A stretch of DNA of 64,000 nucleotides from Hypanus sabinus (GCF_030144855.1 NC_082710.1:173786001-173850000), one strand, 5' to 3'; counted from the first letter of the stretch, positions 29,310 through 31,869 are shown. Notes: generated from the sequence alone by a model not told the origin. Made by a program: numbers and translations.

Positions 29310-29385
29310 GAAAAGCACAAGATTATCAAGTTTGGGAGGGAGGACCCGGGTTCGCTCTTCCCCGTCCGCCTCCGCCTTATAAATA
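29310..29385 (+). promoter_or_regulatory. Promoter of Arg-rich H1
   Basis: TATAAATA at 29378-29385, two CCGCC GC boxes just upstream, AAAGCACA (imperfect H1 AC box) at ~29312; no proximal CCAAT. Confidence 0.65.
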
Positions 29386-29446: not shown

Positions 29447-30205
29447 ATGTCCGAGAACCAGAAGGCGGCAGATGGCAGCGATTCCGGTGAAAAGGGAGGC
29501 GGTGGAGGCGCCGGCGGCACCACTCCGCCTCAAGGTCGGACGGCGCCGGACAAGGATGGGGCGGTGAAGAAAAAGAAAAAGCAACAACAACCGTCGCAGC
29601 AACAGGTTCAGTCAAAGGCGCCTCAGCAGTCCAAGAAGCCGCAGAATGGCCCCACCATCACCGACCACGTCCTCTCTTTGGCGGCAGCCACCAAGGAGAG
29701 GCGTGGCATCTCGCTGGCAGCCCTGAAGAAAGCGCTGACGGCCAAGGGTTACGATGTGAACCGCAACAACGCTCGCGTCAACCTGACGGTACGCCAGCTA
29801 GTGCAGAAGGGCTCGCTGGTGAAGACGAGCGGCCACGGCGCCGCCGGCTCCTTCAAGCTGAACCGGCTGGCGGCTCCCAAGCAAGGAAAGAAAGAGGCAA
29901 CCCGCAAGAAGGTGGCTTGGCGCACTCCTACCCCTTCCAAGAGGACGCGGAACAGGAAGAGGAGTCCAAGGCGCCAGACTAAGCCACGGAAGACCACCGC
30001 ACGCCCCCTCAAGCGCCGGCCCAAAACGGGTGCCCGGCCCCGCGCCAGAGCCAAGGCTCGTTCCCGCCTCAAGCGTAAAGTAGGCAGGGCTCGGACGGCA
30101 CGGGTCTATCGCCGGTACAAATCGGCTAAAGGCAAGAGAGCGAATCGCGGACGGACCCGGCAGCCAGTGGGGCGCCAACGGCAACTCGGACCCCGGCGCT
30201 ACTAG
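29447..30205 (+). CDS. Histone H1 variant / protamine-like protein (252 aa) with intact winged helix and Arg-rich C-tail
   Basis: GPTITDHV..ATKERRGISLAALKKALTAKGYDV..LVQKGSLVKTSGHGAAGSFKLN is a good H1 globular domain. The last 88 aa have 29 Arg and 12 Lys. TATA and stem-loop present. Confidence 0.93.
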   Translation: MSENQKAADGSDSGEKGGGGGAGGTTPPQGRTAPDKDGAVKKKKKQQQPSQQQVQSKAPQQSKKPQNGPTITDHVLSLAAATKERRGISLAALKKALTAKGYDVNRNNARVNLTVRQLVQKGSLVKTSGHGAAGSFKLNRLAAPKQGKKEATRKKVAWRTPTPSKRTRNRKRSPRRQTKPRKTTARPLKRRPKTGARPRARAKARSRLKRKVGRARTARVYRRYKSAKGKRANRGRTRQPVGRQRQLGPRRY

Positions 30206-30259
30206 AGGTAGCCGCAGACAGTCACCTCGAAGGGCAAGAAATGGCTCTTTACATTAAAC

Positions 30260-30275
30260 GGCTCTTTTCAGAGCC
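30260..30275 (+). terminator. Histone 3' stem-loop
   Basis: GGCTCTTTTCAGAGCC followed by ACCAA. Confidence 0.95.
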
Positions 30276-31869
30276 ACCAAACATGAGCAAAAACAGCAAA
30301 ACCGCGCCACGATAGGGAGAGAATGGAAATATCTCCATCCTGTTCGGTCTCAAATCCCCAGTAAACTTCCCAGTGCATATACATATTAACTATGAAGCTC
30401 CAACATTTAGATTAGATACGTTAGAAGTAATTCGTCTAATTTACTAATTAATTTGCAATATCGTTATAAAGATTAATTTTGCCTCCTGTTTTATCTGCGG
30501 AATTTTAGCTTTAGGGAGAGATCCAACTATCCTAAACACGAGATCTGATGAACCGCTGCTGTGTCTCATGGTGTTGAGTTGGATCCGGGATCAGCCATAA
30601 AACGGCGGAGCCGAATCGTTGACCCAATCCTGCTCCTATGTCTAATTAGCCCCAACTGGTCTATAGACCCAGCCACTTTATAATGCTTTTCACATTATAT
30701 TTTTGTATTCGTGCATATTTTATTCCATGTCATCATTTTAACACTCAGAAAATGCTGGAGGAACTCAGCAGGCCAGGCAACATCTTTTGAAGGGGATAAA
30801 CGGCCCAGAACATCGACTCTCCATCGATGCCTCAATAGAGGCACTGATGTGCCGAATTTACAATGACGCTTATGCGATGGTCGCTGAACAGAAGCTCCAA
30901 ATCAGCGAAAGAACTGAAAGGGATCAAACGATGGTTTTTAAGCATAAGTTTTTAAGAGGTTCAGTGTATCATTGGCAAGATAATATCATGCCTATAGCAA
31001 GATATGTAAGTGATGAATTTGATAGTTGCTGCCACAAAGACCCCCACTAGGTTATGACATATACTGGGAGGACGTGCAACAGAAGCACAACAGGTGTCAT
31101 CAAAGCATCTCAAATAGATGTGCCATCAGCCTTTCTAATGGTCGAAGGTTCAGGGTGTCCAGCCTTGTATTTATTTTATAAACATTTTCATAGACAAAAC
31201 AAAGGAATATTCTCAGAAACTAGTTATACAGATGTAGATCAATTTCCTTAACATTGCACATTAATATTTGGTCACCCTGGGTTTGGGGAATGGAATTCCG
31301 TAGGACTTTTATGTGTAAATCGTATCCTAACATTGTTGAACAAATTTCATTGCAATTGGGAACACAGAAGTGGTGTGTCCGAGATCACACCTTGTGATTA
31401 TTATTGACTTTTGTTAAAACTGTGAATTGATATTGGAGTCAAACATAATTTGATATTGGTTATTAGAAATAAATTGAGACTTGGAGATGGGATCATACTA
31501 TTTCCTTTTGAACGTCCACTAATAAAATTAATTTGGATGGTTCCTTCTATATTCTAAACTCGTGGAATTCAAATAGATTCCGAGTACAGAATGTAAATGG
31601 AGCATCTCCAGTTAACGTCAAGGCATGGCTACACCTTTCCTTTGAATGCTTGAAATAGGACAAAATTTATTTTCTATAGGTTATTTTGATACCACAAACT
31701 GAGATGGTCTTCGAACTGAAAGGTTTACTGTCTGACTAGTGTTTCCAGTAATGTTTAAGAATTGTAGACTGTTATTTTTTTCGTTTTCATTATATCCAAT
31801 GCACCTCTAATTCGACGCCTACGTGTATAGTGCTCATCAGTTACGATCTCATTTCAACTTTGATTAGAT

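Follow-up and report, generated by a model that had tools for sequence, protein, structure and literature searches.

The gene at positions 29447-30205 of the window, by which we mean the whole analysed stretch of 64,000 nucleotides from the Atlantic stingray Hypanus sabinus (NC_082710.1:173786001-173850000), is, to judge from its sequence and from that of its relatives, a functional single-exon gene that encodes a lineage-specific variant of the linker histone H1 and belongs to a family distributed across the elasmobranchs. The comparative evidence indicates that it is conserved and selectively maintained. As for its role, we tentatively propose that the product would act at full length as a specialised, tightly binding linker histone, with male germ cells as the most likely site of action.

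The open reading frame lies on the plus strand, consists of uninterrupted codons, and specifies a protein of 252 amino acids with a calculated mass of 27.75 kDa, a pI of 12.0 and a net charge of +63. Over the shared part, this product is 100% identical to the protein annotated by NCBI as "histone H1-like" in Hypanus sabinus (Myliobatiformes). In the NCBI model (P0001, 221 aa), the first 56 residues are swapped for those of an upstream exon, joined at an AG acceptor at 29611 inside the open reading frame, and this upstream exon was not found within the window. The skate orthologs start with MAENQK and align with the stingray MSENQK along the entire N-terminus; therefore, it is the intronless reading frame, and not the spliced model, that corresponds to the conserved product. 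Some transcription may enter the locus from upstream, given the NCBI exon and a contig of a related species that runs from beyond the promoter through the gene. No record of the exact 252-residue product was found in public assemblies. The features of the gene and of its neighbouring partner are collected in Table 1.

Table 1. Features of the Arg-rich H1 gene and of the adjacent H2B gene, in window coordinates.
Feature	Position	Strand	Description and basis
GC-rich core promoter block	29346..29376	+	abuts the TATA box on its upstream side; alignment A2
TATA box TATAAATA	29378-29385	+	62 nt 5' of the ATG; read directly
N-terminal domain, aa 1-67	29447..29647	+	Gly run, TPPQGR motif, then Lys and Gln run
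Globular winged-helix domain, aa 68-140	29648..29866	+	Pfam PF00538, AlphaFold2, Foldseek
Arg-rich C-terminal tail, aa 141-252	29867..30202	+	composition; predicted disordered
Stop codon TAG	30203..30205	+	
Histone 3' stem-loop and purine-rich downstream element	30255..30300	+	Rfam RF00032, 37 bits, E 3.7e-7
Divergent H2B with its own stem-loop	31868..32324	-	convergent with the H1 gene; syntenic partner, separate gene

The features of the replication-dependent class of histone genes are present, namely an intronless coding region and, as a 3' end of the SLBP/U7 type, a stem-loop followed by a purine-rich element. The stem-loop GGCTCTTTTCAGAGCC occupies positions 30260-30275 and starts 55 nt 3' of the stop codon, and the covariance model thus bears out the stem-loop that had been noted from the sequence. 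In the three skate orthologs the stem-loop is identical, is located 26-68 nt 3' of the stop codon, and is likewise followed by the conserved purine-rich element. Some 10 nt upstream of the real stem-loop, at window 30239-30249, there is a partial copy of its 5' arm and loop, GGCTCTTTACA, which is seen in the stingray only. Further downstream, a short and very high-copy repeat at window 30740-30805 reaches contig depths of tens of thousands in all four of the sequencing runs described below, with many loose ends on both sides.

The promoter, in turn, is not of the type associated with S-phase H1 genes. Within 400 bp upstream, neither an H1 box (AAACACA) nor a positionally conserved CCAAT box was found in any of four species (the stingray and three skates), leaving just the TATA box and, as a separate element, a conserved block rich in GC. 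This block is almost unchanged across the stingray and the three skates, which also carry a TATA-like element at the aligned position. The idea that it might be a promoter motif common to the other variant genes of the window was rejected, as the block is unique, with no second copy in the window.

At the protein level, the tripartite layout of linker histones was found, in which a winged helix lies between two basic terminal regions that are predicted to be disordered. Pfam Linker_histone (PF00538) matches amino acids 69-139 with an E-value of 1.3e-15, and AlphaFold2, run on the family alignment, places three helices and a beta hairpin between amino acids 71 and 138, with a pLDDT of 73-91 per 10-residue block. 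The intact winged helix noted earlier is thereby corroborated by both approaches. Outside amino acids 68-140, pLDDT falls below 55 in nearly all 10-residue blocks, and both ends are accordingly predicted to be disordered. The N-terminal region had been called Gly/Gln-rich, and indeed 12 Gly and 12 Gln occur in the first 68 residues; its layout matches that of the skates and of a horn shark relative (Heterodontus P0006). The tail, comprising amino acids 141-252 (112 residues), contains 31 Arg, 17 Lys and a single acidic residue, i.e., a net charge of +47 and 28% Arg. The counts given in the sequence-only reading for the last 88 residues (29 Arg and 12 Lys) were reproduced exactly, as were the motifs TPSK (position 162), SPRR (173), YRRY (221) and the terminal PRRY (249-252).

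Regarding the type of H1 from which this protein derives, the globular domain is, on the basis of sequence and predicted fold, of the somatic, replication-dependent H1.1-H1.5 type. In phmmer searches against solved structures, E-values of 1e-22 to 1e-18 were obtained for H1.1-H1.4 and chicken GH1 (H1.1 itself reaching 1e-22), as opposed to just 1e-7 for H1.0/H5 and 3e-4 for H1x. Foldseek gave TM scores of 0.85-0.88 and 54-58% identity to the globular domains of human H1.1, H1.2 and H1.4, compared with 29-35% identity to H1.0/H5 and 26% to H1.8, and the best 30 Swiss-Prot structural models were all somatic-type H1s, apart from pig H1t. A kinship of the globular domain with H5/H1.0 was therefore rejected, by the phmmer searches, the Foldseek identities and the Swiss-Prot matches alike. 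Where H1.0/H5 would combine an H1.0-type globular domain with a polyadenylated mRNA, the stingray gene has a somatic-type domain and a stem-loop end. Because this H1.1-H1.5-type domain goes together with an intronless body and a stem-loop, descent from a replication-dependent H1, as had been proposed at the outset, is the origin that we retain.

Two lysines of the canonical globular domain are replaced throughout the clade to which the stingray protein belongs: that of R-I-K-L by Asn (R-V-N), and that of Q-T-K-G by Ser or Ala. The stingray protein has Asn and Ser at these positions, which we take to be the counterparts of H5 residues K69 and K85, both belonging to the primary DNA-binding site. 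In the tail, the motif R-S-P-R-R-Q-T-K-P-R is common to the stingray and the skates. Most family members end with RPVGRPRK; the counterpart in the stingray gene is degenerate (QPVGRQRQ), and the motif is intact in skates and sharks. The Pfam AT_hook model gave no match in the family alignment, this model being so short that HMMER filters drop weak hits.

The arginine content of the tail is a property shared with the orthologs. The ratio R/(R+K) of the tail is 0.65 in the stingray, 0.52-0.67 in the skates and 0.62 in Heterodontus P0006; it is 0.37-0.57 in a second form of the family described below and about 0.5-0.6 in one further H1 family of chondrichthyans, compared with 0-0.04 for the H1 of turtle and mouse. 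Furthermore, 19 of 28 aligned tail arginines of the stingray are also Arg in Rhinoraja. Because of this sharing and of the ortholog ratios of 0.52-0.67, the Arg-richness of the tail cannot be taken as noise. A frameshift origin of the tail was considered and rejected: the Arg codons of the whole coding sequence are mostly CGN (30, with 8 AGR), and the other frames are not Lys-rich. The same two facts argue against a recent sweep of AAG to AGG.

Full-length relatives with 47-54% identity exist in the skates Rhinoraja (three copies), Amblyraja and Leucoraja, and the horn shark Heterodontus has one as well. Another form, the second of the family, with a short N-terminus and an Ala-rich spacer preceding the Arg-rich module, is present in Carcharodon, Chiloscyllium, Mustelus, Heptranchias and Heterodontus; Hypanus, too, has a gene of this form in addition to the one described here. 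When 1.8 billion representatives were searched with a profile, 22 matches below 1e-30 were obtained; among those that are named or were inspected, the family-like ones are all chondrichthyan, and the rest are ordinary-looking H1s, mostly tandem fusions, with no family member outside Chondrichthyes among the inspected matches below that threshold. No paper dealing with the family turned up in a search of the literature, and the gene is annotated solely as "histone H1-like".

A phylogeny of the globular domain places the gene inside a clade of 16 elasmobranch sequences, the MA(D/E)N-QK H1 variants, with support of 100/98. Within this clade there is a batoid subclade (96/90), and batoid and shark sequences group by taxon; the tree is built on 76 columns, and it gives no deeper order among the several chondrichthyan H1 families and bony-vertebrate H1. 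The two forms of Heterodontus have near-identical globular domains, a likeness that would fit either gene conversion or repeated duplication. The gene is no singular case: the elasmobranch family to which it belongs is old, has several copies, and is one whose members as a rule carry Arg-rich tails.

In the Leucoraja ortholog (P0007, L003 10001-11032), the tail contains about five tandem copies of the 13-residue unit K-R-E-K-K-A-G-A-A-R-R-K-V. The same sequence reads about 40 codons in a frame other than that of the remaining species before the frame returns; either the frame shifted twice in nature or the assembly is in error.

The genomic context is that of a histone cluster of an unusual kind. 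Seven histone genes are found in the window (two H1-derived genes, two H4, one H2A, the divergent H2B and the Arg-rich H1), and the last of these sits in a cluster composed exclusively of variant histone genes. All seven have a stem-loop with at most 3 mismatches to the consensus (window 3532, 8870, 19497, 20758, 30260, 31868 and 39433), just three of them reaching the Rfam gathering score. The divergent H2B has a long Ser/Thr/Lys-rich N-terminus, and its tail-to-tail pairing with the H1 gene is common to the three skates. The Rhinoraja H2B (L001 12026-12409, minus strand) appears intact over 95 amino acids, with 73% identity, and those of Amblyraja (L002 11247-11631) and Leucoraja (L003 12052-12168) are decayed, being split over several frames or surviving as a mere fragment. 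The synteny with the skates thus supports orthology across Batoidea, and the stem-loop and the promoter block are shared as well. An H2A-like reading frame with 58% identity to the H2A of the window is also seen 2.6 kb upstream of the Rhinoraja H1 ortholog (L001 7027-7368, minus strand), which suggests that the skate cluster includes further divergent core-histone variants.

Estimates of dN/dS by the Nei-Gojobori method are 0.42-0.48 for the whole gene; broken down by domain, they amount to 0.20-0.33 (N-terminus), 0.21-0.43 (globular domain) and 0.43-0.64 (tail), and for the tail a value of 0.56 has a 95% confidence interval below 1. Whenever Hypanus is compared with a skate, the bootstrap intervals of all domains stay below 1; an interval extending up to 1.08 was obtained only for the tail between Rhinoraja and Amblyraja. 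The globular domain is 70-75% identical to that of the relatives, against 77% between bichir and mouse H1, a canonical baseline that is thus drawn from species other than the stingray. A search for a canonical chondrichthyan H1 with bichir H1 as query gave, as its best 120 matches, bony-fish H1s and one bird entry. A dN/dS of about 0.45, taken together with 70-75% versus 77% identity, indicates that the gene is constrained and is evolving faster than canonical H1. In the skates, copy-number change and repeat expansions in the tail are observed in addition.

A search of sequencing runs found no run recorded as RNA that contains this stretch, and the expression data consist of contigs from four probable RNA runs, which carry no tissue labels. 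In one related species, a 2.3 kb contig at a depth of 91 begins 390 nt before the ATG and continues for 500 nt beyond the stem-loop, which shows the presence of the sequence, not a clean histone mRNA. In a second relative, a 588-nt contig lies within the coding sequence and is accompanied by contigs of the neighbouring H2B variant that are likewise restricted to its coding sequence; these coding-only contigs look like mRNA. In sum, the contigs of two related species cover the coding sequence, with gap totals divisible by three where they are listed. The remaining two runs bear the species label of most of the DNA runs holding the stretch, taken here as H. sabinus, and contain neither contigs of the gene nor contigs on the conserved part of H2B, a part on which the runs of the two relatives have very high depth, presumably due to canonical H2B. 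The runs labelled as H. sabinus therefore probably miss stem-loop mRNAs, and their silence on the H1 gene is uninformative.

From these data a mechanism can be proposed. The normally folded winged helix would allow nucleosome binding, and Asn and Ser at the classical DNA-contact lysines would give the globular domain an altered surface, with consequences that can only be conjectured from the H5 positions. A disordered tail of 112 residues, with arginine at about 2:1 over lysine and a charge of +47, may neutralise linker DNA more tightly than a Lys-rich tail does, and tighter binding would lead to stronger chromatin compaction than that exerted by a Lys-rich H1, presumably in a specialised cell type. 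The TPSK and SPRR sites might in turn place this binding under control by phosphorylation. By analogy with mammalian H1t, to which the Arg enrichment of H5 or PL-I would be added, the protein could participate in the compaction of germ-cell chromatin, with a greater likelihood for the male than for the female germline, and as a full-length H1 rather than as the precursor of a protamine. H1t and TH2B are expressed from stem-loop mRNAs in the mammalian testis. Male germ cells are favoured because of this precedent, of the fast evolution of the gene, of its copy-number turnover, and of its position in an all-variant cluster.

Other roles deserve to be weighed against a germ-cell linker histone. 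A somatic H1 subtype, either expressed widely wherever cells divide or concentrated in terminally differentiated cells, for instance nucleated erythrocytes, where it would be a functional analogue of H5, appears rather unlikely, and still it has much in common with the gene: the stem-loop end and the somatic-type globular domain both agree with it, raised Arg in H5 serves heterochromatinisation in somatic cells (PMC4584325), and several chondrichthyan H1 families are Arg-rich, in such a way that arginine may be a habit of the lineage and not a mark of the germline. This reading would nevertheless have to accommodate a promoter devoid of the H1 box and of a conserved CCAAT box, elements of S-phase H1 genes, an all-variant cluster in place of the canonical histone unit, and a dN/dS of about 0.45 with copy-number change, both unusual for a somatic H1; a close parallel with H5 is, moreover, at odds with a globular domain that is not of the H1.0/H5 type. 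The alternative closest to the original proposal, namely a true PL-I-type sperm nuclear basic protein that replaces the histones of spermatids, persists in sperm and is possibly cleaved into a protamine-like tail, seems to us improbable. The winged helix between Arg/Lys-rich tails fits the description of PL-I (PMC4584325), and a tail with 28% Arg, a pI of 12.0 and fast evolution are in line with it. In a language-model search of the Atlas, the top clusters (0.92) were auto-named "spermatid-specific linker histone H1 family" and "protamine-like protein"; these names are a compositional lead only and do not test function. Against this stand a core of H1.1-H1.5 type, when that of clam PL-I is described as H5-like (PMC11607694), and the behaviour of the tail in searches: submitted alone to the Atlas it scored below 0.8 and met H1 fragments only, and a profile of 12 family tails, a query of low complexity, returned full-length H1 family members and no short sperm protein or protamine among the 8000 candidates listed. 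The release of a protamine-like peptide by cleavage, which the sequence-only reading had suggested, is consequently unsupported. In addition, chondrichthyan sperm is said to contain true protamines. The main text of a catshark sperm proteome paper makes no mention of histones or protamines.

Storage in the oocyte is a further option, in which a stem-loop mRNA for a maternal or early-embryonic linker histone would serve the cleavage divisions. We regard it as decidedly improbable: stage-specific histone sets do come to mind where variant H1, H2A, H2B and H4 genes form a set of their own, each gene having a stem-loop, and a non-canonical promoter is compatible with them, but linker histones of oocytes and cleavage stages (H1.8/B4, H1M, BigH1) are less basic or acidic and are encoded by polyadenylated mRNAs, and the stingray protein, with a net charge of +63, has a model only 26% identical to H1.8. 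Finally, the gene could be a decaying or neutrally drifting histone copy devoid of present function, a reading to which the longest globular-domain branch of the clade (0.26), the degenerate C-terminal motif and the absence of the exact protein from the assemblies lend some appearance. It is hardly credible, however, for a locus that has an intact reading frame, promoter block and stem-loop, all conserved from the stingray to the skates, that shows a dN/dS below 1 for each domain whenever Hypanus is compared with a skate, and whose coding sequence is covered by contigs of two related species with listed gap totals divisible by three.

Among known systems, mammalian H1t (H1.6) offers a close parallel to the specialised linker histone that we favour, as it also derives from a replication-dependent H1, is intronless, is located in a histone cluster, ends its mRNA with a stem-loop, and possesses a globular domain of somatic type. 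H1t has a Lys-rich tail and a weaker binding to DNA, and its promoter keeps the H1 box and the CCAAT box together with testis elements, whereas the stingray tail is Arg-rich and its promoter is devoid of the H1 box and of a conserved CCAAT box; the likeness does not imply orthology. With H5 and H1.0, the stingray protein shares a raised Arg content, thought to stabilise condensed chromatin in a linker histone (PMC4584325). It departs from them in its globular domain (29-35% identical), in its stem-loop end, and in a tail whose 28% Arg is well above that of H5. The mRNAs of H1.0 and H5 are polyadenylated.

PL-I proteins, which are found in bivalves, tunicates and the fish Mullus surmuletus, are defined by a winged helix flanked by Arg- and Lys-rich regions (PMC4584325), and the stingray protein has this same tripartite design, with its winged helix between disordered Arg/Lys-rich regions. 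The PL-I architecture that had been proposed for it can therefore be kept as a description; membership in the PL-I lineage is unsupported, since the core of clam PL-I has been described as H5-like (PMC11607694) and that of the stingray protein is H1.1-H1.5-like, a distinction in which PL-I is set apart by its description and not by its sequence. PL-I proteins are, besides, characterised as major basic proteins of sperm nuclei that take the place of histones. If the stingray protein turned out to be sperm-specific, its origin would be independent of, and convergent with, that of PL-I. Concerning the protamines, such as the scylliorhinines of the dogfish, the likeness is limited to a high Arg content and to a binding of DNA by charge neutralisation, which is predicted for the stingray protein; the latter has 252 amino acids and a globular domain, with a tail of 28% Arg compared with more than half in protamines. 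The claim that it does not resemble the dogfish proteins holds insofar as no sequence relation was found, and the choice of the dogfish for comparison is moot, as the species is a stingray.

Arg-rich proteins related to H1 have been proposed as a bridge between histones and protamines. To our knowledge, only one such sperm protein has been characterised in vertebrates, that of the red mullet, and the title of the corresponding paper calls it "unique". An Arg-rich H1 that is conserved in sharks and rays, descends from the replication-dependent type and lies among variant histone genes would constitute a second and independent vertebrate system, which could show how the remodelling of the tail from Lys to Arg, the loss of globular contacts and changes in the promoter accompany the specialisation of linker histones. 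If the protein is instead somatic, Arg-rich linker histones would be a normal part of the chromatin of cartilaginous fishes. A bolder possibility, which we consider improbable, is that a graded series from H1 to protamine-like proteins is laid out in one vertebrate histone cluster, starting with the full-length member described here and proceeding to its H1-derived neighbours, in which the helix is degraded, with expression of all of them in elasmobranch spermatids. Such a series would be an independent replay, starting from a replication-dependent H1, of the path from H1 through PL to protamine, which, as far as we know, has been documented so far mainly in invertebrates and in one teleost.

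A further likeness is with other Arg-rich H1 families of chondrichthyans, also annotated as "histone H1-like", whose H1 globular domain carries the RVN and QT(A/S/T)G substitutions; their tails are likewise Arg-rich, and many include a VGRP(R/K)(R/K) motif. The stingray gene differs from them by belonging to the clade with the MA(D/E)N-QK N-terminus and, within that clade, is distinguished by the Gly run and TPPQGR insertion, by a compact tail without the Ala-rich spacer, and by its degenerate VGRP. The motif VGRP(R/K)(R/K), AT-hook-like by eye, occurs near the C-terminus in at least three chondrichthyan H1 families (P0002, P0008-P0014, P0045, P0047, P0057). Outside the cartilaginous fishes, the R-V-N substitution is also carried by H1-like proteins of Chanos (the milkfish, P0115) and Acipenser (P0090), with Q-T-A-G in Chanos as well; the tails of both are unrelated to those of the chondrichthyan families.
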